Shown here: one piece after another, positions 6,691-61,073 of the stretch | Numbering within the stretch: position 1 is the first letter of the stretch | Layout of the letters: each line of letters starts with the position of its first letter | IMG/VR virus record: IMGVR_UViG_3300048438_000153 | Location: 62,001 to 126,000 of that record | Reading direction: 5' to 3' (one strand) | DNA: 64,000 nucleotides | Translations under genes and position numbers: made by a program | Notes under the pieces: generated by a model | What the model was told of the DNA's origin: nothing | Database searches by the model: none | What the model saw: only the letters and a program-made list of their open reading frames with translations

Positions 6691-6740
6691 ATCTCACACT
6701 CTCTTTCTGAATAATGACTCACGAAAGAGAGTGTGAGATA
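6690..6740 (-). promoter_or_regulatory. perfect 18-bp inverted repeat covering the RBS and start of the gp25-like gene
   Basis: tatctcacactctctttc (6690-6707) is the reverse complement of gaaagagagtgtgagata (6723-6740). Confidence 0.8.
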
Positions 6741-6754
6741 AAGCATTTATTCTC

Positions 6755-10750: not shown

Positions 10751-10797
10751 AGTCATCTCCATTAAGGTCATATTTTATATCCTACCCACGTATCAAG

Positions 10798-34189: not shown

Positions 34190-36868
34190 ATGTTTGACGA
34201 CTTTCTCGCAGACATAAGACGACCTGTCATAGAGTCCTACGAATGGATGAAAGAATGTGACCTAATCTTAGGCACGAAAGAGAACATAACTCAAGCCATT
34301 GACGAGTGCATGGCGGTTGAAGTCTACGGTTGCGACATCGAGACTACAGGACTTGACAACCGCGTCTTTGAAGGGCGCACGATGGACTCTATCGTGGGTA
34401 TCGGGATCGCGCCATCTCACGACAAGGCTTATTACTTTCCTATCGGACACAAGTCAGGCTCAGAGTATAACATTCCTTGGTCAATCATCGGACGAGAGTT
34501 TGGGCGTCTGTTCGACCCTTCCACGAAAGCCCGACCTGTCTTCCACAACATCTCTTTCGACGCGCCTTTCTTAGAGTACAACGGCTTCTTCTCGCTCGGG
34601 AAAGATCGGTGGGATGACCACAAGAAATGGGAAGACTCTCTCATCATCAAGTACCTCCTCAACCCACGTCAAAAAGGAGGGCGTGGGCTTAAGGCTCTGT
34701 CAGACAAGCTCTGTGACATGAAGATGATTGAGCTCAATGAGCTATTCCCCCCTGAAGAGGAACAGCGAGACTACTCGACCATTGACCCTTCATGGCAACC
34801 TTGTGTACTCTACGCGGCGGCTGATCCTCTCTGTACTCTCAGAATATGGGATATCATGAGAAAGGAATACGAAGATGCGCCTGAGCACTCTGACTCGATG
34901 TATAACCTCGAAAAGATGTGCTGTATCGCCACCTCATGGATGCACCGATGCCGAGTGTATATTGACCCTGAGAAAGCGATGGAGTCAGCGATTGAAGGTC
35001 AGCGCCTATGGTGGGAGAGTCTACTAGAGGTATATAAGGGCGCGTCTAAGATTCTAGAGAGAGACATCACACCCTCTTTCGTCAAGATCATGCGCGATGG
35101 ATCAAGAGGTCTGATCGAGCCCTTCGACCCCCGAGCCATCTCTGAGGGAGGGAGCGCCAACTACAAAGTGATCGTACAGGAAGCTCGAAGATACGCGCAA
35201 AACACCGCACCTGATCCAACTCAAAAGATCAGTAAGAGTGTGGCTCTGCTCGGTAAGTCTGCTGGTACTGAGAAAGTGGAGTTTCCCTATACGTATGACG
35301 TTCTCTCTCCTCAACAGCTAGGTTTGCTCTTGAGAGAGTTGGGAGTAGATGGTCTGCTCGCCTCTGAGAAGTCAGGCCAAGTAGTCACTAAGGGAGAAGT
35401 TCTCGATGAGGTCATCGAGAAAAACTCTGAGAAACTCCCTTTCATGAAGAAAGTGAAGAACCTCCGTGTTCTCGTCAAGGCGCTCAGCCAATACCTCATC
35501 CCTTTCATAGAGGACATTGGATCTGACGGTACGCTGAAGCCGAAGTTCGATCAGTTCAGTGCTGACACAGGGCGTTTTTCGTGTAAGACTAACAGTAAGC
35601 CCCATATCGTGAGAGACGGCGGTTGTCGCGTACCTTTTCAGGGCATCCCCGCCTATGGAAAAGACAAAGACAAGAAGCCCGCGATCATTTCTTACATGAG
35701 AGATTGTATAGTCGCGCGCGAAGAAGGGTGGTGGCTGACCGCGATTGACTACGCAGGTGTAGAGCTAAGACTCGTAACTAACCTCTCGAAAGAGCCCCTG
35801 TGGATTAAAGCTTTCTTCGAGTGTTCAGACTGTGGGCAACAGTACCCTAGAGAGATGGGGGAAGATGAGATTCCCACACCGACTCCAACCTATTGTGTGT
35901 GTGGGTCGGATCGCATAGGTGATCTGCACACTGTAACTGCGGTTGCTTTCTACGGCGAGGGCGCTAAGGGAAAACCTGATTGGAAAGACAAGCGAGGGAA
36001 CGGAAAGGGATGTAACTTCGCCCTTTCTTACGGAGGCACAGGGAAAGCTGTTCAGCGCACTATCAAGTGCTCTGCTAAGGAAGGGGACGAAAAGTATAAG
36101 ACTTTCACGAGCACTTACAAGACACTCGCCTCTTGGTGGGGGAAACAGAACAAGTTCGCCCATAAACATGGCTATGTTAAGACGGCTTTCGGACGAGTTC
36201 AGCCCCTCCCTGATATCCACGACGAGGATTACAGAAAGTCCTCGAAAGAGGAGAGAAAGGCGGTGAATGGACCTGTTCAGGGAACGAGCGCGGATATCAC
36301 GAAGCTCGCGATGAGTCTCATCTACAGAGAGGTTAAGAAACGAGGGTGGTTCGATAAGCTCAAGATGATCCTTACAGTCCACGACGAGATTGTCTTTGAG
36401 ATCCATGAAGACGTGATCGGAGAGGCTATCCCTGTACTGACTCAGATTATGGCGAGAAACAAAGCAATCGCCAATCAGGGATGGGAAGTCCCTCTCCTTG
36501 TAGACGTAGAGATCGGAAAGACGTGGGGAGTGCCATACGACCTCAAAGACTTAAGGCGAGGGTACAAGGAAAAGCTCGTACCTGACGGCGTTGATGAAAA
36601 GGGGGAGAAGAAGTACAGAGAGGAGCGCGTTCCTGTGCCTGAATCACTCGCTAAGATTTTCTATGTGGGGAGTGAGGCTGATGAGCCTTCTTCAAGCTCG
36701 CCTGAGAAAGAAGAAGGCTCAGGTTCTTCATCCGAAAGCCCCTCTAAGACTTATGTGCTTAAAGAGCTTTCTCAGGACTCCGCGTTCGATTTGGGTATGT
36801 GGCTCTCCCATAATACGGACGGTGTTGTAACGTATGAGGGGAGAGACATCACGGCGCTGTTTTCTTAG
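34190..36868 (+). CDS. polA: DNA polymerase family A with 3'-5' exonuclease
   Basis: ExoI CDIETTGL, ExoII FHNISFD, ExoIII YAAAD; DTGRFSC; motif A IDYAGVELR, motif B RGNGKGCNFALSYG, NGPVQGTSADI, motif C VHDEIV. Confidence 0.95.
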   Translation: MFDDFLADIRRPVIESYEWMKECDLILGTKENITQAIDECMAVEVYGCDIETTGLDNRVFEGRTMDSIVGIGIAPSHDKAYYFPIGHKSGSEYNIPWSIIGREFGRLFDPSTKARPVFHNISFDAPFLEYNGFFSLGKDRWDDHKKWEDSLIIKYLLNPRQKGGRGLKALSDKLCDMKMIELNELFPPEEEQRDYSTIDPSWQPCVLYAAADPLCTLRIWDIMRKEYEDAPEHSDSMYNLEKMCCIATSWMHRCRVYIDPEKAMESAIEGQRLWWESLLEVYKGASKILERDITPSFVKIMRDGSRGLIEPFDPRAISEGGSANYKVIVQEARRYAQNTAPDPTQKISKSVALLGKSAGTEKVEFPYTYDVLSPQQLGLLLRELGVDGLLASEKSGQVVTKGEVLDEVIEKNSEKLPFMKKVKNLRVLVKALSQYLIPFIEDIGSDGTLKPKFDQFSADTGRFSCKTNSKPHIVRDGGCRVPFQGIPAYGKDKDKKPAIISYMRDCIVAREEGWWLTAIDYAGVELRLVTNLSKEPLWIKAFFECSDCGQQYPREMGEDEIPTPTPTYCVCGSDRIGDLHTVTAVAFYGEGAKGKPDWKDKRGNGKGCNFALSYGGTGKAVQRTIKCSAKEGDEKYKTFTSTYKTLASWWGKQNKFAHKHGYVKTAFGRVQPLPDIHDEDYRKSSKEERKAVNGPVQGTSADITKLAMSLIYREVKKRGWFDKLKMILTVHDEIVFEIHEDVIGEAIPVLTQIMARNKAIANQGWEVPLLVDVEIGKTWGVPYDLKDLRRGYKEKLVPDGVDEKGEKKYREERVPVPESLAKIFYVGSEADEPSSSSPEKEEGSGSSSESPSKTYVLKELSQDSAFDLGMWLSHNTDGVVTYEGRDITALFS

Positions 36869-38839: not shown

Positions 38840-39161
38840 GATCCCCCGCAAGCATATTAGAAAGTTCCTCAACAAAGACCCTGAAACCATTGATATTATT
38901 AAGAAATGGCTCGACAAGAATGGGCTGATCATTCTCTTTACTCAAAGAAAAGCAAAGGGGTGGGAAAAAGTTTGGGCCACAGATGGGGGCAATATCTATA
39001 TGAATGATGAGGATCACAACCCTACTTCAGAAGAACTCGACATAAGGATCAGGAAAGTATCTGTGAAAGAGCAAGAGCCATTGCGCGAGGATCTGCTAGG
39101 GAAAGACGTGTCTTTGAGAGACAAACTAGAATACTTAAAAGAGATGGAAAGACCCCTGTAA
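38784..39161 (+). CDS. hypothetical protein
   Basis: Its stop overlaps the next start (TAATG). Exact start uncertain. Confidence 0.5.
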   Translation: MKKEEFGDLTWRRVSPLGKIPRKHIRKFLNKDPETIDIIKKWLDKNGLIILFTQRKAKGWEKVWATDGGNIYMNDEDHNPTSEELDIRIRKVSVKEQEPLREDLLGKDVSLRDKLEYLKEMERPL

Positions 39162-40354
39162 TGTTTTTTGAATATGATAAAGAAAAACCAAAGCTCCTAG
39201 ATGAGACAACAATAAATGGCCCGTCAGGAAACCTTTATATCCCCAAAGGGCTTTGGCAAGACATGATCAAATCTTATGAGAAAGAAGATGTCTTGAACCG
39301 CCTCCGAGACTTAATCAACAAGGGAGTGATTTCTTTCCCTTATCAACACTACAGTAAAGAGGAGGTGCTTGACGAGTTTCAGCGACTCAGGAACTCAGTA
39401 GCTTCTTTCTCTGAAAGCGAGTGGGAGTGCAACCGATTGGTGACTGAAGCCCCTCTCTCATTTAGGAGAGGTAGCTACTACACTCCCAAGTCAGCTCGGG
39501 TTGGGAGTAAGGTGTCTGATTTGTTCACACAGAGAATAAGAATGGAGGTTGGACATCAGAGGTTTCTTTCTCCTATAAGAGCGTGGGAGAGTGAAAGAAA
39601 GTCCTTTCTCAACTATCTCTTCAACCCTGATATGTTTGAAGGAGACATCAACGAAAGATGTCTCAGAGTTTCGCTGAGTATGAGGTCATACATTGCGAGT
39701 CAGTTCAAACCTGAGTCAGCTAAGGTCATTTATGATACCTTTCAAGCCAAGAGAGTCCTAGACTTCAGCGCGGGATGGGGAGATAGACTCGTCGGGTTCC
39801 TCGCAAGTAATGCTGAGAGTTATATAGGGATTGACCCTAACTCTAAACTCCACGAACCCTATCAGAAGATTGTCGATTTCTGTGACGTAGGGAAAGAAAC
39901 AAGGTTCATCTGCGCTCCCGCAGAGGAAGCAGATTTAACGGGTGTTGAGGTGGACTTTATATTCACCTCTCCTCCCTATTTCACTCTCGAAAGGTACAGT
40001 CAGGAAGACACTCAGAGTTGGAAGCGATACCCTAAAATCAACGCTTGGCTAGATGGATTTCTATTTCCTACTTTATCTAAGTGTTGGAATTGCCTTGAAG
40101 AAGGGGGGAGAGTACTCGTCAATATCGCCGACGCTTATACGAATGGAGAGCGAGAGGAAATATGTCAGCCGATGTTAAGACATATGGAATCTCTTGGGGC
40201 TACTTACGAGGGAGTCATAGGTTACGAAATGGGAGCGAGACCAGGTAAAAACATGGATAATATCGGCAAGACTTTCTGTGAGCCGATATGGGTTTGGAGC
40301 AAAGGGGAAGCTCCCGAACCTAAGTGGAAATCAGATACGTTTTTGGGAGTCTAA
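39161..40354 (+). CDS. DNA amino-methyltransferase (N4-C/N6-A type), paralogue 1
   Basis: Motif I VLDFSAGWGDR, IGIDPN, motif IV FTSPPYF. Confidence 0.85.
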   Translation: MFFEYDKEKPKLLDETTINGPSGNLYIPKGLWQDMIKSYEKEDVLNRLRDLINKGVISFPYQHYSKEEVLDEFQRLRNSVASFSESEWECNRLVTEAPLSFRRGSYYTPKSARVGSKVSDLFTQRIRMEVGHQRFLSPIRAWESERKSFLNYLFNPDMFEGDINERCLRVSLSMRSYIASQFKPESAKVIYDTFQAKRVLDFSAGWGDRLVGFLASNAESYIGIDPNSKLHEPYQKIVDFCDVGKETRFICAPAEEADLTGVEVDFIFTSPPYFTLERYSQEDTQSWKRYPKINAWLDGFLFPTLSKCWNCLEEGGRVLVNIADAYTNGEREEICQPMLRHMESLGATYEGVIGYEMGARPGKNMDNIGKTFCEPIWVWSKGEAPEPKWKSDTFLGV

Positions 40355-40355
40355 T

Positions 40356-41066
40356 ATGTGGGGTTATTATGGGTCAAAAGCAAAGATTGTTAGTCAATAC
40401 CCGAAGCCGACCAAAGATAAGATTATAGAGCCATTTGCAGGAACTGCTCAATATGCTCTTAAATACTTTGATAGAGACATAGAACTCTATGATAAATATG
40501 AGCTGATCGTAAATCTTTGGAAGTGGTTACAGAAATGTAGCCCAAAAGACATCACATCACTACCTCACTTAAAGGCAGGCGAGAGCGTAGATGATTACGA
40601 ATGGGATTGTGATGAAGCAAAACACTTAATAGGCTTCATCATTTCAGGCGGTGCTACTCAGCCAAAAAAATCAGTGACTAAGTGGAAAGCGGTGATCAGG
40701 CCGAACACTCAAAACTACAAGAAAACTCTCATTTCTTCTAACCTATACAAGATCAGGCATTGGAACATCGAGTGTAAGTCTTATGAAGAAATAGATAACC
40801 AAGAAGCTACTTGGTTCATTGACCCTCCTTATGAAGAGGGGGGGGTATATTACAGACACAGCTCAAAAAACATAGATTTCAGCCACCTTTCAGAATGGTG
40901 TCAGGAACGTGAGGGAGAAGTGATTGTCTGTGAGAAACAAGGTGCGTCTTGGCTTCCCTTTGAACCGCTTACAGAAGTGAAAGGCTTGAAGGCACAGAGC
41001 TTCCAAGAAGCAGTCTGGTTGAAGAACATGAGTTTACCTAAGCAATTAGACTTGTTTGGACTTTAA
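40356..41066 (+). CDS. Dam/D12-like N6-adenine methyltransferase (short form)
   Basis: YYGSK, IEPFAGTA, FIDPPY. True start MWGYY at 40356. Ends KQLDLFGL. Confidence 0.85.
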   Translation: MWGYYGSKAKIVSQYPKPTKDKIIEPFAGTAQYALKYFDRDIELYDKYELIVNLWKWLQKCSPKDITSLPHLKAGESVDDYEWDCDEAKHLIGFIISGGATQPKKSVTKWKAVIRPNTQNYKKTLISSNLYKIRHWNIECKSYEEIDNQEATWFIDPPYEEGGVYYRHSSKNIDFSHLSEWCQEREGEVIVCEKQGASWLPFEPLTEVKGLKAQSFQEAVWLKNMSLPKQLDLFGL

Positions 41067-41069
41067 GAA

Positions 41070-41246
41070 ATGAAGAACCAAATATTTAACGAGGTCTGCT
41101 TAGAAACCATGTCTCGAATGAGCGATAGCTCAATAGACAAAAACATGAATAACATCGGCAAGACCTTCTGTGAGCCGATATGGGTTTGGAGTAAGGGCGA
41201 AGCCCCTGAGCCCAAGTGGAACCAAGACACTTATTTCGGAGTATGA
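41070..41246 (+). pseudogene. 58-aa chimeric relic: beta-class MTase-like N-terminus fused to an SPPY-paralogue C-terminus
   Basis: MKNQIFNEVCLETMSRMSDSSID|KNMNNIGKTFCEPIWVWSKGEAPEPKWNQDTYFGV*. The second half nearly duplicates the end of 39161-40354. Confidence 0.75.
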
Positions 41247-41249
41247 AGC

Positions 41250-42401
41250 ATGAGTCTTACTAGAAAGAGCTTTCTCAACTCTAAAGGTGAGATATACCTC
41301 ACACAGAAAGAGATTAGAACCCTTGCGAAAGAACATGACATAGAAGAGATTATAGAGGTACTCGGTAAGATCGTAGACGAGTTGCCTTTCCCACTCACTG
41401 AGTACACAGATCAAGAGGTCATAACCGATTTTAATAGGTTAAAAAACACACACCTTGAAGTTATACGGGGCGGTTGGGTGAGCCACAGGATAGATGAGGC
41501 GATCTCTCCTTTATACAGAGGGGAGTCAATAAGATTCCCTAAGACAAGAAACATAGGGGGCAAAGTCTCTAATCAATACACAGAGGCGTTAAGGTTATCT
41601 ACGCCTCATGCGAGATACAAAAGCCACAAAGATCTTTGGTATGCTAAGAGAAAGTATTGGTTAAAGTATTTCTTCAACATCAAGATGCACACAGGAAATC
41701 TCGAACAGGGTAAGCTGAGGCAAGGTTTGTCAGGTCAATATTACTGCTCTCAGTTTAAACCTCTCATCGCTAAGTCAATGTACGATACTTTCCAAGCTAA
41801 GAGAGTCTTAGACTTCAGCGCGGGATGGGGAGACAGACTCGTGGGCTTCCTCGCGAGCGGAGCTGAGAGTTATGTCGGGATAGACCCTAACTCTAAGCTA
41901 CATGAACCCTATCAGAAGATCGCTGATTCTATTTCTGATAGGGTAGCTTCGACTTTCGTCAGCCCTGCGGAAGATTTTGATTATAACTCTGTTGAGTACG
42001 ACTTTGTGTTTACTAGCCCTCCCTATTTCGACCTAGAGAGATACAGCAACGAAGGCACTCAAAGTTGGAAAAGGTACTCAGAATTTGAAGAGTGGGTTCA
42101 AAACTTCCTGTTTAAAACGCTAACCGCCTGTTGGAGAAACCTCTCAGACAACGGTCGGATGATAATTAACATATCTGACATATATTCAAAGGGAGCAAAG
42201 AGAGAGATCTGTAGCCCCATGTTAAGACATATGGAGTCTCTAGGCGCTACCTATGAAGGTGTTATAGGGTATGAGATGGCCCATAAGACTAGCAAATCGG
42301 TTAAGCGACACGATCTGCCTTTCTGCGAGCCTATGTTCGTGTGGTCAAAAGGAAACCCACCTGAGCCTCAGTGGAACTCCCAACTCTTTTTTGAGATCTA
42401 A
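41250..42401 (+). CDS. DNA amino-methyltransferase, paralogue 2
   Basis: VLDFSAGWGDR and FTSPPYF. Confidence 0.85.
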   Translation: MSLTRKSFLNSKGEIYLTQKEIRTLAKEHDIEEIIEVLGKIVDELPFPLTEYTDQEVITDFNRLKNTHLEVIRGGWVSHRIDEAISPLYRGESIRFPKTRNIGGKVSNQYTEALRLSTPHARYKSHKDLWYAKRKYWLKYFFNIKMHTGNLEQGKLRQGLSGQYYCSQFKPLIAKSMYDTFQAKRVLDFSAGWGDRLVGFLASGAESYVGIDPNSKLHEPYQKIADSISDRVASTFVSPAEDFDYNSVEYDFVFTSPPYFDLERYSNEGTQSWKRYSEFEEWVQNFLFKTLTACWRNLSDNGRMIINISDIYSKGAKREICSPMLRHMESLGATYEGVIGYEMAHKTSKSVKRHDLPFCEPMFVWSKGNPPEPQWNSQLFFEI

Positions 42402-42537
42402 GACTCCTGACCCTGAGCCTAAGTGGACACAAGACAACTTCTTCGGAGTTTAAGAAATGCAGAACCAAATCTTCAATGAGGAGTACTTCAAGATGTCGAA
42501 AGTAAGACTAGAAAACACTCAGGAGTATCTTTTCTAA
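42402..42537 (+). pseudogene. two relics: an orphan MTase tail (PDPEPKWTQDNFFGV*) and an internally deleted MTase mini-ORF at 42457-42537
   Basis: The mini-ORF MQNQIFNEEYFKMSKVRLENTQEYLF* joins an N-terminus like that at 41070 to a beta-MTase-type C-terminal EEY..S..RL helix. Confidence 0.65.
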
Positions 42538-43238
42538 TGCACCACATACAAGAAAGAAACTGCGCTGAAGCGTGGATTAAAGCCACTCAAGACATCCTCT
42601 CTAAAGGAGAGAATATGGGTGGCCTATACGAGATCCTCAATATGGGGATAGAAATCACTTCCTCTGAGGTATGTCCTGTCTTTGACAGCCATTTCAGAGA
42701 CGTCTTCGGAGACGAGAGAATAGACTATGCTAAGTCTGTCACTTTCATCGAGCCTAAGCCCAACCCTCTCTTTCCCGATTTAAGAGAATACGAGCAGAAC
42801 AAGACGGGGAAATGGACAAATAGCTATTGGGGTCGGATGTTCTCTTGGAACGGCGGATTCAACCAAGTCGAACAGACGATTAAGAGACTGAAAGAGAACA
42901 AGCAAGCCAAGACCATCGTAATCGGAGTCTACGACCCTCAGACTGACGGAAAGAAAGTCATGGGAGGGATGCCCTGTCTGCTCACCATAGACCTCAAGCC
43001 TAGAGGCGGTAAACTTAACCTCACAGCTAACTTTAGGAGTCAGGCTGTCTCCAAGTCAGGGTATGCGGATTACATGGCTCTCGTAGAGTTCTGTGACTTC
43101 CTCTGCAAAGAGAGCGGGTGTCTCGACTTTGGGTTAGTGACTTCTTTCGCTCACTCATGTCATGTGAGGACTCAAAACGGAGAACTTAAGAAATCCAAGG
43201 AGCTGATGAGGAGATATCATGAAGAAATGGGTAGCTGA
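42537..43238 (+). CDS. thymidylate-synthase-fold pyrimidine-modifying enzyme (dCMP hydroxymethylase-like)
   Basis: YWGR, NQVEQTIKRL, MPC (catalytic Cys), FRSQAVSKSGYAD, HSCH. Confidence 0.8.
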   Translation: MHHIQERNCAEAWIKATQDILSKGENMGGLYEILNMGIEITSSEVCPVFDSHFRDVFGDERIDYAKSVTFIEPKPNPLFPDLREYEQNKTGKWTNSYWGRMFSWNGGFNQVEQTIKRLKENKQAKTIVIGVYDPQTDGKKVMGGMPCLLTIDLKPRGGKLNLTANFRSQAVSKSGYADYMALVEFCDFLCKESGCLDFGLVTSFAHSCHVRTQNGELKKSKELMRRYHEEMGS

Positions 43239-44130
43239 TTTTAAGAGTATTCTTTACTCCACTATAGAGGCTCTCCCCCCTGAAGTGAGTCTTTCTTTCT
43301 CGGGTGGCGTTGACTCCTCTATGCTTTTATTCGCTATGATTGATTTAGGCAGACCCCCTACAGAGCTCATCACATTCAAGATTGTAGGGGAATACTCTAA
43401 GGACTTAGATTTCGCTAGAAAGACCGCCCATCATTACGGCATCCCTTTGAGGGTTGCTCAGATCCCAAGTAACCCTCAAAAGAAAGACCTCGAAAGAGAG
43501 ATTAAAGAGATTCTTAGAGAAACGAGAGTTTCTCGGAGCATAGACACTCAGGTGTCCTATGCCTACTCCTACATGACCTCAATCACCTCAACTGACCATC
43601 TTGTTCTCGGGTTCTACGAGGACTTGTACTGCCTCAACAATAAGAAAAACTCTGTCATGTATAGCAATATGCTAAAGGGAAATCTCTCTGAGAAAGAGTT
43701 CGTTTCTTGGATCAATCAAGAAAGAGTCGAAATATATCAAGGCAAGGTTGCAGGGCGCAAAGCTCAGATTGACCACAACTATGTCGTGATCTCTAACTAC
43801 ATTGAGTCTAAGGGTATTCAGACTATCTGTCCCCTCAGAAATCAGGAGATGTTGGATCATTGTCTTAAGAAAGGGTTTGAAGATCTGACGTTCGATCTGA
43901 ATGGAAAGAGAAGGTCTAAGTGGTTCATCAAAGACATGATCTTTAAGAAGTATTTCGACCAACACAAAACCAACATATCTAACTTTCATACATCGGGAAA
44001 AGAAGGTGGGCTGAAAGGTCTGCATCAGAGGGTGCTTCTAACAGGATCACCATACAAAGACACAAGAGCAATTTACAATCAAATACTTAAAGACATTGAG
44101 TTTGAAGAGAGCGCGCATTTCCTATGCTAA
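43219..44130 (+). CDS. asparagine-synthetase-like PP-loop ATP pyrophosphatase/amidoligase (no glutaminase domain)
   Basis: SLSFSGGVDSS, DLDFARKTAHHYGI, CPLRN, SKWFIK. Confidence 0.8.
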   Translation: MKKWVADFKSILYSTIEALPPEVSLSFSGGVDSSMLLFAMIDLGRPPTELITFKIVGEYSKDLDFARKTAHHYGIPLRVAQIPSNPQKKDLEREIKEILRETRVSRSIDTQVSYAYSYMTSITSTDHLVLGFYEDLYCLNNKKNSVMYSNMLKGNLSEKEFVSWINQERVEIYQGKVAGRKAQIDHNYVVISNYIESKGIQTICPLRNQEMLDHCLKKGFEDLTFDLNGKRRSKWFIKDMIFKKYFDQHKTNISNFHTSGKEGGLKGLHQRVLLTGSPYKDTRAIYNQILKDIEFEESAHFLC

Positions 44131-44957
44131 ACCTACACACACCTGTCGAAACTTACCGCATAGAAAGCACTGAGGTAGACGTTAAGAGAGATGACCTTCA
44201 TAATGGAGATCTCGACCTCCCTCCTTGGGCAAAGCTAGAGGGGGTGCGCCAACTACTCCTCTCAGACTGCTTCGATAAAAGAAAGCCCATCGTACACCTA
44301 ACTATCAGAGGTTCATACACAGGGTGGGCTCTTTCTTATTTCGGGAGAGAATACGGGTACGACATCAAGATCGCCTATCCGAAAACCAAGTCTTACCCTC
44401 AAGAAATGCTCGATAAGATCACTCAATATGGAGGGGAACTTGTGCCTCTCCGACATAATATGGTGGCGGTTCTCTCAGCTCAGGTTAAGAAGATGGCTAA
44501 AGAGCGCGGGTGGCAAATGAGCCCCGACGCTTTCAACCACCCTGTCTATGTAAAGTCTTGGAAAGAAAGATCTGCTTCTTTCTTTCAAGAGAACGACTAT
44601 CAGACCCTCGTCATTCAAGGGGGGAGTGGAGTTACGAGTGTTGGACTCATTCAGAGTTTTCTCGGTGTAGATTACATTGCGGGTCAGATGTTTGAGCCCA
44701 CATACGAGGGAAAGAAAGTAATCATCATCTCCACCTCAAGTGTAAAGACCGTGAAGTCTGCGCTCGTATCAAATATGGGGAGTGTGCCTTCGTGTGTAGA
44801 AATCTACAAATCTGAACATGACTTCTATGACGAGATTCCTACTCATGCGACACCGTTCCCCTGTAACCGTCTGTGGGACAAGAAAGCGTGGGTTTGGATG
44901 ACTCAGAATGTGGGTGAGTTGAAGGATAGAACTCTCTTTTGGAACTTGGGGGCATAA
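44124..44957 (+). CDS. PLP-dependent fold-type II enzyme (D-cysteine desulfhydrase/ACC deaminase-like)
   Basis: TPVE...VKRDDL...WAK (PLP Lys), GGSGVT phosphate loop, WDKKAW, LFWNLG. Confidence 0.8.
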   Translation: MLNLHTPVETYRIESTEVDVKRDDLHNGDLDLPPWAKLEGVRQLLLSDCFDKRKPIVHLTIRGSYTGWALSYFGREYGYDIKIAYPKTKSYPQEMLDKITQYGGELVPLRHNMVAVLSAQVKKMAKERGWQMSPDAFNHPVYVKSWKERSASFFQENDYQTLVIQGGSGVTSVGLIQSFLGVDYIAGQMFEPTYEGKKVIIISTSSVKTVKSALVSNMGSVPSCVEIYKSEHDFYDEIPTHATPFPCNRLWDKKAWVWMTQNVGELKDRTLFWNLGA

Positions 44958-44960
44958 GCT

Positions 44961-46184
44961 GTGTTTTTTGAGTACGAGAAAGAACTGCCTAAAACAGATC
45001 TCTCTGACTATAGTCTCCTCAAGAATGGGCAAATCTCTATACCTTCCTATGTATGGCGCGAGATTAAAAACAGCTTCGATAAGAAAGAGGTGATCGAGCA
45101 CATCTCTCAACTTATACAAGATCACAACCTCCCCTACCCGAGTAGGACATACACAAAAGCTGTACTCGACAGGGACTTCAGAAAGCTCAAGAGCGAGTCA
45201 TGTGGTGTGAAAGAGGGATCTTGGGAGTGCTTGAGGACGATCCCTAATGTCACTCTTAAATACCTTAATCGTCAGTGCTACATACAGGCTAGTCAACATG
45301 GTCTAAAAGTCTCGGATCAGCAGACGCATCTCTCTCGCATGAAATGCGCTCACTTCGAGCACAAGAGTCCGTACAGAGAATGGACTCGGCAAGGGTGCAA
45401 GTCGAAGGTCAGATACGTTCTAAGAGTGTTGTGGAGTCTATCAGAAGGAGACGCCCTTAAGAACGGTGTGTGCGAGAAGCAACTGAGAGACTGCTTGAGG
45501 TTGGGCAACTACATGGCGAGTCAGTTCAAGCCCTCATGCGCTAAGACCCTGTATGATTTCTTTCAGGCTAAGAGAGTCTTAGACCTAAGCTCAGGGTGGG
45601 GTGACAGGCTCGTAGGTTTTCTTGCGAGTGGGGCTGAGAGCTATGTCGGGATAGACCCTAACTCTGAACTCCACGAACCCTATCAGAAGATCGCTGACTT
45701 CTGTGACACAGGGAAGGAAACACGATTCATCTGTGATCCCGCAGAGGACGCAGACTTAACGGGTGTTGAGGTGGACTTCGTATTTACGAGCCCCCCTTAC
45801 TTTGACGTTGAAAAGTACAGTGAAGAAGACACTCAGAGTTGGAAACGATATAAGTCGAAAGACCTATGGCTGAATAACTTCTTTCTCCCATCGCTCACTA
45901 AGGCTTGGGAGGCTCTTTCTGAGGGAGGGAGGATAGCCATCAACATCGCAGACAAGGGTCACTCAAGAGAAGATGTGGGCGAGGACATCTGTAGCCCCAT
46001 GTTAAGACATATGGAGTCTCTAGGCGCTACCTATGAGGGGATTATCGGGTATAGGATGAACAAGAGGCCGGGTGACAGAATGGGCGCGGTTGGAGGCGCG
46101 GTTTTCTGTGAGCCGATATGGGTTTGGAGTAAGGGTGAAGCCCCTGATCCCAAGTGGACTCAAGACACCTATTTCGGAGTTTAA
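44961..46184 (+). CDS. DNA amino-methyltransferase, paralogue 3
   Basis: VLDLSSGWGDR and FTSPPYF; GTG start. Confidence 0.85.
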   Translation: MFFEYEKELPKTDLSDYSLLKNGQISIPSYVWREIKNSFDKKEVIEHISQLIQDHNLPYPSRTYTKAVLDRDFRKLKSESCGVKEGSWECLRTIPNVTLKYLNRQCYIQASQHGLKVSDQQTHLSRMKCAHFEHKSPYREWTRQGCKSKVRYVLRVLWSLSEGDALKNGVCEKQLRDCLRLGNYMASQFKPSCAKTLYDFFQAKRVLDLSSGWGDRLVGFLASGAESYVGIDPNSELHEPYQKIADFCDTGKETRFICDPAEDADLTGVEVDFVFTSPPYFDVEKYSEEDTQSWKRYKSKDLWLNNFFLPSLTKAWEALSEGGRIAINIADKGHSREDVGEDICSPMLRHMESLGATYEGIIGYRMNKRPGDRMGAVGGAVFCEPIWVWSKGEAPDPKWTQDTYFGV

Positions 46185-46185
46185 G

Positions 46186-47364
46186 ATGTTTTTCGATTAC
46201 GAAAAAGAGATCACATCTCTCGATGAGATCAAGTATATTAAGAACGGTTATTTCCACATCCTCCCTAGTGAGTGGGAGATGCTTAGAAAGTCTTTTACCA
46301 AGGAAGAAATAAAAGACCATATCGCGCCCATCCTGAGTTCATTACCGTACCCCTATTTCGAGTATTCAGAGAAAGAGCTGAGGAGAGATTTCTCTAAGCT
46401 GAAATCACTCTCGAATAAACTCAAGCAAGGGGAATGGGTAGCTACAAGACAAGCAGCAGAAAGAGACACACTCTTTCTCGGTCAGAGTATCTATATGGAC
46501 TGCTACTACACAGGGAAAGGAATATCTGATCAGTACACTCAAGAGGCGCGCTTTAAATGCTCTTATAGAGCTGTCGGTAACTCCCCTTACGACGAGTGGG
46601 TCAGTGCGGACAAGAAGAACTCTTTCTTAAGATGTTTCTTCGGCATCTCAGAGAGGGACATCTACGAAAGAGGAGGAGTCAACAAGCAGACACTCAGGCG
46701 CGCTCTAAAGATGCACACATACACAGCGAGTCAGTTCAAGGCTGAAGCCTCTAAAACCCTGTATGATTTCTTTCAGGCTAAGAGAGTCTTAGACTTCAGT
46801 GCAGGATGGGGTGACAGGCTCGTGGGTTTCCTCGCTAGCGGAGCAGATAGTTATGTCGGGATAGACCCTAACTCTAAGCTACATGAACCCTATCAGAAGA
46901 TCGTCGATTTCTGTAACACAGGGAAGGAAACACGATTCATCTGTGCTCCCGCAGAGGACGCAGACTTAACAGGTGTTGAGGTGGACTTCGTGTTTACAAG
47001 TCCTCCCTATTTTGACATAGAGAGATACAGTGACGAAGACACTCAGAGTTGGAAACGATACCCTGAAATAGACTCTTGGGTCGAGGGCTTCTTCCTCCCC
47101 ACTCTAAGCAAGTGTTGGAGTGTTCTTTCTGAGGGCGGGAGAATACTTGTCAACATCGCCGATAAGAAGGGCAACGACATCTGTAGCCCCATGTTAAGAC
47201 ATATGGAGTCTCTAGGCGCTACCTATGAGGGTGTTATAGGCTACCGTATGTCAGAAAGAGGAGGGCAAAAGACCACCGTACCGAGCTGTGAGCCGATATG
47301 GGTTTGGTCTAAAGGCGACGCGCCCGAACCTAAGTGGACTCAAGACACCTATTTCGGAGTTTAA
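46186..47364 (+). CDS. DNA amino-methyltransferase, paralogue 4
   Basis: True start MFFDYEKE at 46186; VLDFSAGWGDR and FTSPPYF. Confidence 0.85.
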   Translation: MFFDYEKEITSLDEIKYIKNGYFHILPSEWEMLRKSFTKEEIKDHIAPILSSLPYPYFEYSEKELRRDFSKLKSLSNKLKQGEWVATRQAAERDTLFLGQSIYMDCYYTGKGISDQYTQEARFKCSYRAVGNSPYDEWVSADKKNSFLRCFFGISERDIYERGGVNKQTLRRALKMHTYTASQFKAEASKTLYDFFQAKRVLDFSAGWGDRLVGFLASGADSYVGIDPNSKLHEPYQKIVDFCNTGKETRFICAPAEDADLTGVEVDFVFTSPPYFDIERYSDEDTQSWKRYPEIDSWVEGFFLPTLSKCWSVLSEGGRILVNIADKKGNDICSPMLRHMESLGATYEGVIGYRMSERGGQKTTVPSCEPIWVWSKGDAPEPKWTQDTYFGV

Positions 47365-47562: not shown

Positions 47563-47682
47563 ATCTTTTCTCCGATATAGGTGTTGGTGTGTGGGAATGA
47601 GTCGGAACTGACTCATGAACATTTATACCGATCAGTTTTACTTTTATACCTAGTTAAGAGAAAAGTAGAAAGAGGGACACTC

Positions 47683-48354
47683 ATGAGAACAATCACAGCA
47701 AGAGTCGCCACAAAGTTCTTAAAGAAAGCAGCGGAAAGTCTTGAGATACACATCTATGACTTCGATGGAACTCTGTTCCGTAGTCCTGAAGCTCCTGAGT
47801 GGTGGAGTAAAAGAAGATATGGTCAGTGGCACTCCAACCAATCTTCATTGGGTCAGCCCTTTGTGCCTAACAACCCTTCTTCAGACTATTGGATTAACGG
47901 CGTAGTAGAGGAAGCAAAGAAGTCCATAGCAGACTTGAATACTTGGGCAGTCATGTGTACAGGACGCATCGACACAGGAGCTCTCAGATACAGAGTGGCT
48001 GAGTTACTGAGGCAAGAGGGTCTTGATTTCGATCAGAACTTTCTTAACGACACAGGTAGGCTGACAAGACCCTACAAGAAAGTGACTCTAATCGAACTCC
48101 TGAAGCAGTTCCCACAGGTCAAGAAAGTCGTTGTGTGGGAGGACACTCAGAAAAACCTCGACGCGCTCGAAAGCATCTGCGACAGGATCGGGATCGAGTT
48201 TGAAGGGAAGCTCATTTCTGAGAGGCTTCTCTCTTCAAACCACATCTCAGAGGATGAATACATAGACTTTCTTAGAGGAGAGCTCTCCGCTAAAGAGTTC
48301 ACTCAGATCTATAAGGCTCTACAGAAGAGTAGAAAGAGAAAGCAAGAATTATGA
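47683..48354 (+). CDS. HAD-superfamily phosphatase (Swiss-Army-Knife RNA-repair type) with RVATKFL leader
   Basis: IYDFDGTLFRSP, MCTGR, YKK, WED. Confidence 0.8.
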   Translation: MRTITARVATKFLKKAAESLEIHIYDFDGTLFRSPEAPEWWSKRRYGQWHSNQSSLGQPFVPNNPSSDYWINGVVEEAKKSIADLNTWAVMCTGRIDTGALRYRVAELLRQEGLDFDQNFLNDTGRLTRPYKKVTLIELLKQFPQVKKVVVWEDTQKNLDALESICDRIGIEFEGKLISERLLSSNHISEDEYIDFLRGELSAKEFTQIYKALQKSRKRKQEL

Positions 48355-48671
48355 GAAAGACAGCCTCTTCAAAGAGAGTCGCAAAGATGTACTTCTTAGC
48401 GAGCACAAACTTGCCTCTCTTAGAGGAAGCCTTACCAAACACCTTCTCAGAAATCGAGCCCTTTAACCGAGTCTCTTGTAGTCACGACATTATGGAGAGC
48501 CTCAAGGCTGAGAAAGAGTTCAACCAAGAGACTCTCTTAAGGGTCTTGTCTGAGTACACTCAAGTAGATACCAACCTTGTCATGGCTGATGTCTCTCACT
48601 TATTCTCAGACGTGGGAGTAGCTCAGAAAGAAAAGCTCTTATCAGCTCTCACCACAGATAGAGAGCTGTAG
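48351..48671 (+). CDS. hypothetical protein with MRKTAS-RVAKMYF leader
   Basis: Leader motif; ATGA overlap. Confidence 0.6.
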   Translation: MRKTASSKRVAKMYFLASTNLPLLEEALPNTFSEIEPFNRVSCSHDIMESLKAEKEFNQETLLRVLSEYTQVDTNLVMADVSHLFSDVGVAQKEKLLSALTTDREL

Positions 48672-49451
48672 AGTGAGGTAGGTAGAAAGAGAGTTAAGCT
48701 CTTTCACTACCTTGAAGGGGTCGAACTTAAGACGACGATTATCACCTTTAAGTCTAGAAAGAGGCTTTCGGAGTTTTTTCTGAACCTCTTGAGCCATTGA
48801 CTCTTCAAGCTTTGACGTAAGCGCGAAGGCTGACTCAAGATCCTCGATCAAGTCTTGACCAACTTGACCTTGCTCTGCGTCAAGAACAGCCTCTTCAAGT
48901 GCTCTCTTAAGCTTCATAAGAACAGGCTTGCAAGAGATGACTGATTGGTTCGCCCACGAGCCTGCGTGAGACTCTAGACCCACAGGATACTGACCGAGAG
49001 GGAGCTTCCTGTTGTTTGGAGCGCGGTGGTAGTCTCCAAAGGCAGAAATATAACCCTTCTTAACCTTACTTAGCTCAAGGCGTTGAAGCTCGTACTTTGC
49101 ACCCGCGAGGTTCTTGAAGGTATCGCGTCTCTCTTGGAAACGAGGCCCAAGACGACCATACCTCTTGATGAGTGTGTAGCCCCCGACATTCTGAGGGTTC
49201 TGAACGATCAGCATCTCGTAATACTTAGACTGATTCTTCTCGCTATCAATCTTGTAAAGCATGGAGGCTTCCCCCTCCCTTGCTTTCTGACGTGTAAGAC
49301 CCTCAGATTTGAGGTAGGGCTTACCCGCAGCAGTCTTATTGATTTGTTGAGAGGCGCGCTTCGCCATAGCCTGACGAACATAAGCTCTTTTCTCTAGATA
49401 CTCGATGCGGTCTTCAAGGGCTGTCAGATTTTCTGAAGATAACCTATACAT
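48642..49451 (-). CDS. WGR-domain protein
   Basis: KIDSEKNQSKYYEM...LIKRYGRLG...A..EL..L..SKVKKGY. Confidence 0.75.
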   Translation of the reverse strand: MYRLSSENLTALEDRIEYLEKRAYVRQAMAKRASQQINKTAAGKPYLKSEGLTRQKAREGEASMLYKIDSEKNQSKYYEMLIVQNPQNVGGYTLIKRYGRLGPRFQERRDTFKNLAGAKYELQRLELSKVKKGYISAFGDYHRAPNNRKLPLGQYPVGLESHAGSWANQSVISCKPVLMKLKRALEEAVLDAEQGQVGQDLIEDLESAFALTSKLEESMAQEVQKKLRKPLSRLKGDNRRLKFDPFKVVKELNSLSTYLTLQLSICGES

Positions 49452-49508
49452 AGTGTCCTCCTCTTTGGTAAGGAAAATAGATAAACCAAGGAGGAGATAA
49501 AAAACCTA

Positions 49509-49841
49509 TTAAGAGCTGTAGCTGTAAGAGACTACCGCGAACTCTTTCTTGCCGATGATTTCTTTCGGAGAGAGATCGGTTCTCTTAATAGCCCACTCTA
49601 CATAGTAAGTACGTGGGATAAACTCTGTGCTTAGAGTCTCTCCCACATAGTAGACGCCTTCAGACTCTCTGACAGGAGAGCGATCTCCTAGACCGACGCG
49701 ATAGACTCCTCTTGTTTGAGTCTCACCGTAGAAAGTATACGTGATCTCGTAAGGGTCAAAAGGAAACCCGTTCTCGTCTGCTATAGATACTCTTAAGTCA
49801 TTCGGACCGAGTAGTTGGAGTTGTTTGAACAAAACAGCCAT
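49509..49841 (-). CDS. hypothetical beta-rich (Ig-like) structural protein
   Basis: DPYEITY...GVYY...YYVEW pattern. Confidence 0.5.
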   Translation of the reverse strand: MAVLFKQLQLLGPNDLRVSIADENGFPFDPYEITYTFYGETQTRGVYRVGLGDRSPVRESEGVYYVGETLSTEFIPRTYYVEWAIKRTDLSPKEIIGKKEFAVVSYSYSS

Positions 49842-50044
49842 CAGGTAGCACCCGCATATAAACCGAGAAAGAGATCTTCAAGCAGTGAGTGATCGAACAC
49901 ATCGTATATCACGTCTACAGTTTGAGAGTCAGGAAATAGCCAAACGGATCTCCCTACGTTAACCTCAATTAAGGATACCTGAAGAGTGCTACCCTTTAGG
50001 CATCTCCTGAAGAGAGCAACAGGGTTTGAAAAATCAATCAGCAT
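49841..50044 (-). CDS. hypothetical protein
   Basis: Coupled TGATG overlap. Confidence 0.45.
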   Translation of the reverse strand: MLIDFSNPVALFRRCLKGSTLQVSLIEVNVGRSVWLFPDSQTVDVIYDVFDHSLLEDLFLGLYAGAT

Positions 50045-50055
50045 AAGGTGTTCCT

Positions 50056-50394
50056 TCAGAAAGTAGCCAAGAGCTTCTGAGCGGTGACAGGCTTTTCAAC
50101 TTGTATAACTAGGTCGCGGATCAGCTCAGACCCATCAGCCACAAGTTCAGACTTGCATTCTACAAATACAGTATAACCCGCAAGCCCTTCGGGGATTTGA
50201 TACTGAGCTATGAAACGATAAGCCTGATCAGTAGCTCCCATAGGGAGGTCTGCGTCCGTCAAGGCTGTCCTCACAGCGCCTACAAAGTAAAACACTTGAT
50301 AGACGACATTCTGAACGGTCAGCGGTTTACCTAGCTCATCAAGCCAAGACACTTGTAGTGGGTGCGTATCGCCTTCTCTAGCTCTAGTAGTCAT
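50056..50394 (-). CDS. hypothetical beta-rich structural protein
   Basis: REGDTHPLQV start; late operon context. Confidence 0.5.
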   Translation of the reverse strand: MTTRAREGDTHPLQVSWLDELGKPLTVQNVVYQVFYFVGAVRTALTDADLPMGATDQAYRFIAQYQIPEGLAGYTVFVECKSELVADGSELIRDLVIQVEKPVTAQKLLATF

Positions 50395-50396
50395 GA

Positions 50397-51095
50397 TCAG
50401 TCCTCGTGAGTGTGGTAGCCCTCTCCGAAGAGAAAGTAACGGTGGAGGTCAGAGAGCAGAGCGTGGGCGTGTGAAATCTTATCCTCAACCCAATCTTCTA
50501 GCTCCTCACCCTCATGTACTTGACCTTCAAGGGTGCGGAGAAAGTCATCCATCTCTCGGATATTCTGAAGGCTCATGTAAGAGCCTCTGTGATGCCCCCC
50601 TCCTTGCTTCACAAATCGGGAATCGAGATCTCTTTCTAGCTCGTCTTCTTCCTCAATCATATCTACGAGCTGATCCGCGAGGTCATCAATCAAGCCCTCC
50701 TCTTCAGCGATCTCATAGAGATCATAATCTGACGCGGTGCGCTTGTAGAACTCACCCTCAGAAATGAAGCCGTCATCGTCGTCATCGAGAAGATCAAAGC
50801 CCTCTTCCCACTCGCGCTCAGAAATCAAACCGTCGCCATCAATGTCGAGGTCGTCGAAGTGAGGGTTATCCCACTCTTCTTCTGAAATAAAACCAGAGTT
50901 ATCTGTGTCGATCTGATCGAAAGCGTACTCCCACTCTTCGGGAGAAAGGCGTCCGTCATCGTCTTCGTCCATGTCTCGGAAAGAAGATGATGAAGTCTTA
51001 GTCTCACCGTAGTCGTGCCTCATGCGTAGAGGCTGTGTAAGAAAGGGGCTTCTCTCGCGAGAGAAATCAGGTGAGAATTTATGTTTGTAGCTCAT
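50397..51095 (-). CDS. four-EF-hand (calmodulin-like) protein with an extra C-terminal domain
   Basis: Loops DEDDDGRLSPEE, DTDNSGFISEEE, DIDGDGLISERE and DDDDDGFISEGE. Confidence 0.85.
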   Translation of the reverse strand: MSYKHKFSPDFSRERSPFLTQPLRMRHDYGETKTSSSSFRDMDEDDDGRLSPEEWEYAFDQIDTDNSGFISEEEWDNPHFDDLDIDGDGLISEREWEEGFDLLDDDDDGFISEGEFYKRTASDYDLYEIAEEEGLIDDLADQLVDMIEEEDELERDLDSRFVKQGGGHHRGSYMSLQNIREMDDFLRTLEGQVHEGEELEDWVEDKISHAHALLSDLHRYFLFGEGYHTHED

Positions 51096-51112
51096 AGCTT
51101 TAGTTGTCTTTC

Positions 51113-51880
51113 TTAGTGGTTGTTGATGTAGGCAGATGCAACGCGCTCAATCATTGCATACCTCTCTCCGCTTGGGCTCTTCTTATGTTTGGGCTTACGC
51201 GATCTACCCTTTGCCACATCTTTACTTCTGTTGTGGTGCTTACCCTTACCTGATGACCCCACGCCCCCATCAAACATACCCTGAGTGCTCGGGTCGCGGA
51301 ACTTAGGTATGGTGTTAGGGTCTTTTTTCTTTTTCTTCTTAGAAGCCGTCTTAAGACTCGCCATCACCTGACGTCCGTCTTCGGTGATCTCACGATCAAG
51401 CATGACCGCAGGCCGACGAACAAGGTAGTTAGGCCATTTCTCAAACCACTTAGAATAAAACTCGTCTTCCCCTACCTCTCTAACAGTCTTATCCGGGTTC
51501 GGGATGTTCGGGTCAGCGACGTGAACGATGTAGTTACCGCGCTCTCCTGTGACATCAAAGATCAGGCTCGCGTGACTCCAATCACGACCCTCGGGATTCC
51601 ACGCAATTAAGACAGGCTTTCCCTGATCAGTCCATGCTTTCACCTGAGAAAGAGTAGCAGGTGTGGTGAGCGTAGCCCGACACCCAAAGTACTGAGCGCA
51701 AGCTAAGACTTCTTCCCATCGAGCACCCTTCATAGGTTGCGCGCCGATGACCTTGTTTACCTGATCTTCGTTGCAGTCAACACCGAGCGCGTTGAGAGCC
51801 ATACACGTCGAGGTAGAGACACAGCTAAACTGAGATCTCTGTCTGATGGGCTTTACGTTAGCCTTCGCTGTTCTTCTCAT
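51113..51880 (-). CDS. C39-like cysteine peptidase with MRRTA leader
   Basis: RQRSQFSC (Q..C), WSHASL (H), VADPN (D). Start placed at 51880 from the RBS and the TAGATCGTCTAT motif at 51918-51929. Confidence 0.8.
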   Translation of the reverse strand: MRRTAKANVKPIRQRSQFSCVSTSTCMALNALGVDCNEDQVNKVIGAQPMKGARWEEVLACAQYFGCRATLTTPATLSQVKAWTDQGKPVLIAWNPEGRDWSHASLIFDVTGERGNYIVHVADPNIPNPDKTVREVGEDEFYSKWFEKWPNYLVRRPAVMLDREITEDGRQVMASLKTASKKKKKKDPNTIPKFRDPSTQGMFDGGVGSSGKGKHHNRSKDVAKGRSRKPKHKKSPSGERYAMIERVASAYINNH

Positions 51881-51954
51881 GGGAAGCACCTTTCTTAGTC
51901 TTTCCTCTAACCCTCTTATAGACGATCTACCAAGGGACGACATTCTCCGCATAT

Positions 51955-52405: not shown

Positions 52406-53182
52406 ATGAACGAGCAGAAAGCTGGATGTGAAGCCATCGTGGAAGCGATGAAGGAAGACGCTAAGAAAAAAGGCTCTAGGGCAAAAAATATCGACCATTG
52501 GAAGTCCTTTGCCTGCCAAGCCATCGGAATCTCCAAGATGGGGTCAGCGCGGTGGCTGATGGTCATCAACTACGGCGTGAGAGAAGGCTATTTTAAGATT
52601 GTAAACGTCAAGGAAAAAGAAACCCTCTCCTTAGACACAGAGACACCCCCCCAAGTCTCTCTCATCGAAGAAGATCCCGAAGTCGAGACTCCTGAGCCTC
52701 CCGAAACGCCAAAGCGCGACAAGAGAGGATTCATGCCCTCTGACTACATCAAGGGTACAGGGATGCTTAAAGCAGAAACACCTAGAGCCAAGTCAATTCG
52801 AGAGAACGCGCACCGCTCAGACCTCATCCCTCAAAAGGGAGATCTCCTATGGGCGATCCGACCCGATAACTCCGTCTTCCATTCTGAAGTAGAAGAGGTC
52901 AGCATCGGAGTCCACGTCACGCCCCTCAATAAGAAAGATGGGCATTGGAGCTACGTCTCCTCTAATGACGTGTATGAAGATCAGAAAGAAGCTAAGAAAG
53001 AAGCGGATCGCAGAAGGTCAGAGAAAGAGAAAAGGTCAGCTAAGACTTATTGGTCTGCCGAGCTCGTGAATCGCGACGAATACGCTCTCTTCAAAGAATA
53101 CCTTGATAACAGAGAAGCCTTCTTCGCCTACTTGAAAAAGTTCTCCGAGGACACTGAGCTTGAGGGCAATCTCTTAAGCTAA
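52406..53182 (+). CDS. hypothetical protein
   Basis: Long ORF co-oriented with the preceding gene. Confidence 0.65.
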   Translation: MNEQKAGCEAIVEAMKEDAKKKGSRAKNIDHWKSFACQAIGISKMGSARWLMVINYGVREGYFKIVNVKEKETLSLDTETPPQVSLIEEDPEVETPEPPETPKRDKRGFMPSDYIKGTGMLKAETPRAKSIRENAHRSDLIPQKGDLLWAIRPDNSVFHSEVEEVSIGVHVTPLNKKDGHWSYVSSNDVYEDQKEAKKEADRRRSEKEKRSAKTYWSAELVNRDEYALFKEYLDNREAFFAYLKKFSEDTELEGNLLS

Positions 53183-59457: not shown

Positions 59458-59464
59458 CCCATTT

Positions 59465-61059: not shown

Positions 61060-61073
61060 GAATCACCTCTTTC

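Follow-up and report, generated by a model that had tools for sequence, protein, structure and literature searches.

A thymidylate synthase-like gene of a marine jumbo phage lacks the folate-contacting aspartate and lies in an operon that hints at an undescribed cytosine modification

We found that an uncultured marine jumbo phage encodes a thymidylate synthase (TS) homologue with the catalytic cysteine and a cytosine-type specificity residue, but without the aspartate that contacts folate. In about 80 divergent phage contigs this gene sits in a tight operon, mostly followed by an asparagine-synthetase-type amide synthetase and a homologue of the phage M6 gp52 PLP decarboxylase. Our best reading, held as somewhat more likely than not, is that it encodes the first enzyme of an undescribed phage pathway that hypermodifies cytosine, predicted to act on dCMP at C5.

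The stretch analysed here (the window, 64,000 nucleotides) comprises bases 62001-126000 of a 275,102-bp IMG/VR virus record, classed as linear and about 88% complete. Its family A DNA polymerase (34190-36868) is most like that of an uncultured 485-kb “huge phage”, at 42% identity, and no cultured phage is close. The region under study occurs in at least 20 seawater or marine metagenome runs, nine of them with 74-98% of the sampled words. An independent 149-kb IMG/VR contig carries an identical copy of the gene. The sequence is therefore real and the phage is widespread. The relevant features, in window coordinates, are the following.

42537..43238 (+), TS-superfamily gene (233 aa), member of the A/R170-D178 clade, predicted dCMP C5-modifying enzyme
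42975..42977 (+), codon of Cys147, the catalytic nucleophile (E. coli Cys146), in the invariant Pro-Cys motif
43035..43040 (+), codons of Arg167-Ser168, the 5'-phosphate binders (E. coli Arg166-Ser167), invariant in the family
43044..43046 (+), codon of Ala170, at the position of E. coli Asp169 (folate pterin contact)
43068..43070 (+), codon of Asp178, at the position of E. coli Asn177 (base-specificity residue, Asp being the cytosine type; role of N177D from PMC13326640 and PMC8670742), invariant
43219..44130 (+), stand-alone asparagine-synthetase-type synthetase domain (PP-loop SGGVDS), 303 aa, overlapping the end of the TS-like gene by 20 nt
44124..44957 (+), fold-type II PLP enzyme (277 aa), full-length homologue of the M6 gp52-type decarboxylase of base-amino-acid conjugates, overlapping the preceding gene by 7 nt
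39161..40354 (+), SPPY-motif DNA methyltransferase-like paralogue 1 (397 aa)
41250..42401 (+), SPPY-motif DNA methyltransferase-like paralogue 2 (383 aa), immediately upstream of the TS-like gene
44961..46184 (+), SPPY-motif DNA methyltransferase-like paralogue 3 (407 aa), immediately downstream of the PLP enzyme gene
46186..47364 (+), SPPY-motif DNA methyltransferase-like paralogue 4 (about 392 aa counted from the conserved MFFDYEKE start)
47581..48354 (+), HAD-family phosphatase-like gene downstream of the cluster (Pfam HAD_SAK_1, E 1.3e-13, with a weak phrog_415 match), a possible nucleotidase whose link to the module is conjecture

We first examined the TS assignment. The 233-aa protein scores 26.2 bits against Pfam PF00303 (Thymidylat_synt), just above the cut-off of 24.3 bits, and matches the methanogen TS model TIGR03283 over its full length (E 4.5e-19). 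An AlphaFold model built on 24 relatives is confident (pLDDT 92.9), and Foldseek matches it at probability 1.0 to the CMP hydroxymethylase MilA, then to the phage HY126 dCMP hydroxylase AfhB (PDB 9iqc/9iqu), then to many TS structures. In Swiss-Prot, the nearest folds are the methanogen “putative thymidylate synthases”. The TS fold is thus confirmed.

The sequence-only reading, made for positions 42960-43170, had placed Asp at the Asn177 position and Ala at Asp169, with the catalytic Cys of an MPC motif intact. This observation holds. The span lies inside the ORF and covers M145-P146-C147 (42969-42977, within GGMPC) and residues 166-178, FRSQAVSKSGYAD (43032-43070). Four independent alignments agree, comprising phmmer to MilA, a family profile against PDB chains of MilA, AfhB and S. 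aureus TS, and a profile-profile hhalign comparison with an alignment holding E. coli ThyA, T4 gp42 and RB69 gp48 (probability 99.7%). The family stretch RSq[r/a]vsksGYaD is placed without gaps on MilA RANDAFRGAVSD, AfhB RSQNCAVVMQLD and S. aureus TS RSADIFLGVPFN, with the same 20-residue Cys-to-Arg spacing as in E. coli. One single-sequence phmmer alignment to T4 TS (1tis, E 0.45) inserted a gap and is outvoted. In terms of E. coli ThyA residues, E58 corresponds to E60, Y94 to Y97, R126 and R127 to K125 and T126, L143 to G144, C146 to C147, R166 and S167 to R167 and S168, D169 to A170, N177 to D178, H207 to H209 and Y209 to R211.

This pattern is a family trait and not chance. A word-indexed search found 181 relatives, all from metagenomes (Tara, JGI, ENA, Logan), some on contigs of 220-290 kb. 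An exhaustive HMMER search of 1.84 billion cluster representatives found only 13 clusters below E 1e-30, followed by a gap to distant, short TS-like proteins at about 1e-19. In 24 aligned relatives, down to 45% identity, P146, C147, R167, S168, S174, G175, Y176 and D178 are invariant. Across 78 IMG/VR relatives position 170 is Arg in 69 and Ala in 9, never Asp or Asn. One correction to the sequence-only reading follows, as Ala is particular to the sub-clade of the window protein and most of the family has Arg there. Related short TS-like proteins with Asp169 also carry Lys and Tyr in the 170-176 loop, so only position 170 is clade-specific. In a tree of 118 TS-domain sequences the A/R170-D178 proteins form one clade, inside the short TS-like radiation and beside clades that keep Asp169 with either Asp or Asn at position 177. 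Other clades without Asp169 also exist, with His/Phe/Tyr and Asn177, and with Asn169.

The clade was found only in uncultured aquatic phages. A megablast of the region against 50,697 phage records gave nothing, and tblastn of the TS-like protein gave only hits of 21-28% identity to TS genes of Enterococcus, Gordonia and Salmonella phages. No cultured phage is known to carry this clade.

As for dTMP synthesis, the phage genome has a ThyX (E 1.4e-46; 204698-205327 in genome coordinates) and a dCMP deaminase (247085-247417), with no second PF00303 gene. This is indirect evidence that the TS-like gene is not the dTMP source of the phage. The genome also has a MazG-type pyrophosphatase and a dNK-family kinase (130406-130963 in genome coordinates), while no dUTPase-family match was found in it.

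Next, we looked at the gene neighbourhood. A total of 79 loci were fetched from IMG/VR with the family profile, plus locus L010 and JGI, Tara and ENA contigs, and their ORFs were clustered. The order TS-like, AsnB-type, PLP enzyme holds in 62 of 79 loci, with spacings of +1 nt or overlaps, and most exceptions are contig ends. The same holds on JGI and Tara contigs. In the window, the four SPPY-motif paralogues and a Dam-like gene flank the module, and homologues of its methyltransferase-like genes lie within 7 kb in 61 of 80 loci. Promoter and terminator scans gave counts at chance level. One locus (L089) carries an in-frame TS::AsnB fusion, the only natural one found. It looked like Rosetta-stone evidence, but its junction removes the TS C-terminal helix and the glutaminase Cys, so it may be a deletion or an assembly artefact, and we give it little weight.

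In 58 loci the AsnB-type partner is a protein of about 500 aa (501 aa in most other phages) that starts with MCGI, the Ntn glutaminase nucleophile. The example tested (locus L004) aligns to E. coli AsnB at E 1e-39 and passes the TIGR01536 cut-off. In 16 loci, including the window, only the synthetase domain is present. The window protein has the Pfam Asn_synthase domain and a SFSGGVDSS motif but no N-terminal Cys glutaminase domain. Its model (pLDDT 91.8) best matches beta-lactam synthetase, carbapenam synthetase and AsnB (TM by query 0.64). These enzymes adenylate a carboxylate and form an amide. We asked whether Ala or Arg at position 170 tracks the short or the glutaminase-containing form, and it does not (R/full 55, R/short 9, A/short 6, A/full 3). 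A complex prediction of the TS-like dimer with the PP-loop protein scored 0.03, which is evidence neither for nor against binding.

The third gene encodes a PALP-fold protein with an invariant Lys37 in a PxWxK motif and a conserved GSGVT phosphate loop. It is a full-length homologue of phrog_7093 and of proteins in 63 cultured phages found by tblastn, mostly Pseudomonas Yuavirus-type phages. It aligns end to end with Pseudomonas phage LKO4 gp13 (25% identity, E 7e-19), the counterpart of M6 gp52. In LKO4 that gene sits beside the SPL-like radical SAM gene and near a thymidylate synthase gene, as in M6. In M6, gp52 (predicted PLP lysine K36) decarboxylates C-alpha-glycinyl-thymidine in DNA to 5-(2-aminoethyl)uridine (PMC8989533). 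Besides gp52, the M6 pathway uses a uracil-type (Asn177) dUMP hydroxymethylase, a 5-hmdU DNA kinase, an aGPT-Pplase amino-acid:DNA transferase and a radical SAM isomerase. We found none of these here, with tblastn of the LKO4 neighbours against the 275-kb genome and blastp against the 80 loci, although BLAST sensitivity is limited and the genome is estimated 88% complete. A radical SAM domain fused to one family member (P0128) is of the B12-binding methylase type, not the M6 gp53 isomerase type. The M6 pathway shares with the one predicted here a TS homologue making a modified pyrimidine nucleotide and a homologous PLP enzyme that removes the carboxylate of a base-linked amino acid, while here an AsnB-type synthetase stands in place of the other enzymes and the base is predicted to be cytosine.

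Furthermore, the context points to the nucleotide pool. Ribonucleotide reductase, thioredoxin, helicase and DNA polymerase genes flank the module in many phages. In six loci a PRA-PH/MazG-type NTP pyrophosphatase lies just upstream, and in four a dUTPase-family gene lies just downstream. Distant relatives that keep Asp169 and have Asp at position 177 are fused to NUDIX or Ham1 domains. This resembles the T4 logic of dCTPase, dCMP hydroxymethylase and kinase.

Among characterised proteins, the folate-dependent (d)CMP hydroxymethylases T4 gp42 and Streptomyces MilA share the TS fold, the Cys nucleophile and Asp at the Asn177 position, and MilA is the best PDB match by sequence profile and by fold. 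Both keep Asp169 (RSND in T4 gp42, RAND in MilA) and an acidic residue at position 143 (PMC13326640), this clade has neither, and identity is only 16-17%. The flavin-dependent 5-hydroxy-dCMP synthases RB69 gp48, DLP3 gp80 and HY126 AfhB (PMC13326640) are likewise small phage TS homologues (about 235 aa) with the catalytic Cys, N177D, no Asp169 and no C-terminal TS tail, and they perform the first, mononucleotide-level step of a cytosine hypermodification. AfhB is the second-best PDB match. These enzymes have the diagnostic Asn at position 169 and Glu at 143, where this clade has Ala/Arg and Gly/Ser/Lys, they belong to a different branch of the tree, and their partners are arabinosyl or glycosyl transferases. 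Lastly, the methanogen “putative thymidylate synthase” family (TIGR03283; MJ0757 and relatives) shares the compact 200-230 aa architecture, a full-length alignment at 20-22% identity and the Lys/Tyr-containing 170-176 loop. It is the closest curated family, but the archaeal-type proteins have Asp169 and Asn177 (RSHDFGRKAYGN type), and the window protein scores 68.8 bits, well below the 174.55-bit cut-off.

Taken together, what the analysis establishes is a TS-fold protein with the covalent-catalysis Cys, the 5'-phosphate clamp (R167/S168, K125) and the Glu58 and Tyr94 equivalents, an invariant cytosine-type Asp and no Asp at the folate-contacting position, encoded in a conserved, translationally coupled operon with AsnB-type and gp52-type genes, usually beside SPPY methyltransferase-like genes and near replication and nucleotide-metabolism genes. 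The activity itself, its substrate and its cofactor are inferred from sequence, structure prediction and gene context alone. In this view the enzyme would bind dCMP, add Cys147 to C6, and use the resulting C5 nucleophile to install a group. The next two enzymes, a carboxylate-adenylating amide former and an alpha-amino-acid decarboxylase, could work on that group directly, which implies a carboxylate- or amino-acid-bearing side chain rather than a plain hydroxymethyl. The final base would then carry an amide and/or aminoalkyl group at C5 of cytosine. A difficulty is that the Gln-dependent AsnB form would make a simple carboxamide, which is hard to reconcile with a single side chain that is also decarboxylated, unless that side chain has two carboxylates, as in an aspartate-like moiety. 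Alternatively, the enzymes may act on different intermediates, or on DNA, as the PLP homologue in M6 does, and the three enzymes need not act on one small molecule.

The interpretation given in the sequence-only reading, a dCMP substrate with non-standard and possibly folate-independent chemistry at C5, is partly supported. The cytosine-type Asp, the intact nucleophile and the family-wide lack of Asp169 stand, and non-standard chemistry is now more credible than that reading could know, but folate independence is not shown. That reading also missed the strongest evidence, which is the conserved operon. We consider it slightly more likely than not, though unproven, that the electrophile is not methylene-tetrahydrofolate. 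Asp169 is kept in the sequences of characterised folate- or pterin-type members examined here, namely E. coli ThyA, T4 gp42, MilA and the archaeal-type relatives (RSHD). The only characterised TS clade without it, D169N, has swapped folate for a flavin and makes 5-hydroxy-dCMP (PMC13326640; 9iqc carries FAD), although the clade described here has A/R rather than N, and the E58 and Y94 equivalents are retained in both folate and flavin enzymes, so they do not discriminate. In addition, the position mostly shows a charge reversal to Arg, and the kinase and transferase needed to activate and displace a hydroxymethyl group were not found, while the enzymes that are present need a carboxylate. Mutagenesis of the equivalent L. 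casei Asp221 reportedly showed it to be needed for folate binding and catalysis.

The most serious rival, which we consider possible but less likely, is a conventional folate-dependent dCMP hydroxymethylase (or dCMP methylase) with a diverged folate site, whose 5-hydroxymethylcytosine is elaborated by the neighbouring enzymes. The fold, Cys, E58 and Y94 equivalents and N177D are as in T4 gp42 and MilA, and most known phage pyrimidine hypermodifications start from a hydroxymethyl group (PMC8989533, PMC13326640). Against this stand the missing Asp169, the G/S/K at the Leu143 position instead of the Asp/Glu typical of hydroxymethylases (PMC13326640), and the lack of any detected 5-hm pyrimidine DNA kinase or aGPT-Pplase-type transferase. 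A divergent folate site cannot be excluded.

A flavin- and O2-dependent 5-hydroxy-dCMP synthase is very unlikely. AfhB is similar in length, and both have N177D and lack Asp169, but the diagnostic Asn is never found here (AfhB has RSQN) and RB69 gp48 groups with T4 gp42, far from this clade. No glycosyltransferase or NDP-sugar genes accompany the module, and an AsnB-type synthetase and a PLP decarboxylase have no obvious use for a 5-hydroxyl.

Also very unlikely is the use of the Cys-C6 adduct for chemistry at C4/N4, for example exchange of the exocyclic amine as in bisulfite-type transamination, with the AsnB-type and PLP enzymes processing an N4-linked amino acid and the SPPY transferases belonging to the same scheme. 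The support is only indirect, namely that the SPPY motif IV is typical of N4-cytosine methyltransferases, that these genes flank the module in most loci and that the folate-contact residue is absent. No TS-family enzyme is known to do this, Y97 and E60, which serve C5 chemistry, are conserved, and the methyltransferase-like genes vary in copy number and have variable N-terminal domains, as ordinary sequence-specific methyltransferases do. Finally, a genuine archaeal-type thymidylate synthase supplying dTMP, suggested by the TIGR03283 match and the Swiss-Prot fold neighbours, is the least likely, given the sub-threshold score, Asp instead of Asn177, the missing Asp169, the phage's own ThyX and dCMP deaminase, and the strict operon that it leaves unexplained.

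A bolder possibility, which we regard as doubtful, is that the enzyme has given up folate and uses the Cys-activated C5 of dCMP in a Mannich- or aldol-type attack on a carboxylate-bearing, amino-acid-derived electrophile, such as an imino or keto acid or an acyl-adenylate made by its AsnB-type partner. The Arg at the former Asp169 position would hold that carboxylate. This would create a C-linked amino-acid-nucleotide conjugate in one step, then amidated (AsnB-type) and decarboxylated (gp52-type). The result would be a previously unseen amide- or amine-bearing cytosine in the DNA of widespread marine jumbo phages, and a third cofactor regime for the TS superfamily after folate and flavin.

TS-superfamily enzymes are already known as the entry point of most known phage pyrimidine hypermodifications, and their active-site signatures are used to predict which base a phage makes. 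What is new here is the active-site signature and its pathway context, as full-text literature searches found no paper describing this clade or a module of TS, asparagine synthetase and PLP enzyme. This third signature, alongside Asp169 (folate) and Asn169 (flavin), is tied to a conserved operon with no described counterpart, and is common in seawater and other aquatic viromes. It gives a concrete, cloneable target for finding a new DNA base and may also reveal new C-C or C-N bond-forming chemistry on a nucleotide. Such bases matter for phage resistance to restriction and CRISPR, for reading metagenomic DNA, and as enzyme tools for nucleic-acid chemistry.

We first observed four paralogous SPPY-motif (N6/N4-type) methyltransferase-like genes across window 39161-47364, with C-terminal catalytic halves that are nearly identical and N-terminal regions of roughly 190 residues that are divergent. 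Two C-terminal remnants ending in ...EPKW.QD..FGV lie at 41070-41246 and 42271-42453, and short "M(K/Q)NQIFNE" ORF starts follow two of the copies. This looks like repeated duplication and recombination that diversifies target recognition. A Dam-like gene is wedged between methyltransferase-like paralogues 1 and 2, and further genes were seen elsewhere in the window. An unusual run for a phage is found on the minus strand at 48642-51952, composed of a WGR-domain protein, an EF-hand calcium-binding protein and a Peptidase_C39-like protein. Two other minus-strand stretches contain several very large ORFs, of 1096, 1338, 784, 1309 and 957 aa.

40278-41066 (likely start 40356), D12-class Dam-like adenine methyltransferase gene (Pfam MethyltransfD12, E 6e-7)
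48642-49451, minus strand, WGR-domain protein
50397-51095, minus strand, EF-hand calcium-binding protein
51113-51952, minus strand, Peptidase_C39-like protein
2357-10771 and 53174-63947, minus strand, the very large ORFs

Next, lineage-specific genes lie next to the module in some of the other phage loci (L048-L050, e.g. L004 6766-7938; L049 7293-8780; L039 10613-11239). These are a P-loop ATPase + GNAT fusion (phrog_11143), a GmrSD_N + HNH nuclease, and an S-adenosylmethionine lyase, all of which are plausible players in modification or anti-restriction.

Some variations of the TS-like gene itself were found, as fusions. At locus L089, positions 7001-9133, there is an in-frame 710-aa TS-like::AsnB-like fusion, with a junction that deletes the TS C-terminal helix and the glutaminase N-terminal Cys. 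It could be a natural variant, a deletion or an assembly artefact. At locus L010, positions 7088-9118, a family member with Ala at position 170 (protein P0128) is fused to a B12-binding-type radical SAM domain. Its operon has an ATP-grasp-like protein and a short AsnB-type synthetase but no PALP-like gene, which suggests a variant end product. Among distant relatives, TS-like domains that keep Asp169 and Asn177 (proteins P0162, P0167, P0171 and P0153) are fused to MtrA and a PterinBD-DUF4346 domain. These proteins look archaeal in type and may deliver a methanopterin-type one-carbon unit to a TS domain.

Finally, other uncharacterised TS-like clades also lack Asp169 (proteins P0169, P0178, P0183, P0197, P0201, P0211 and others; P0172, P0199, P0250). 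One is a uracil-type clade with His/Phe/Tyr at that position (RNQ[HFY]...YGN), while another has Asn169 but no Asp at position 177 (RSQN...NF). Each of these clades may mark further non-folate chemistry.
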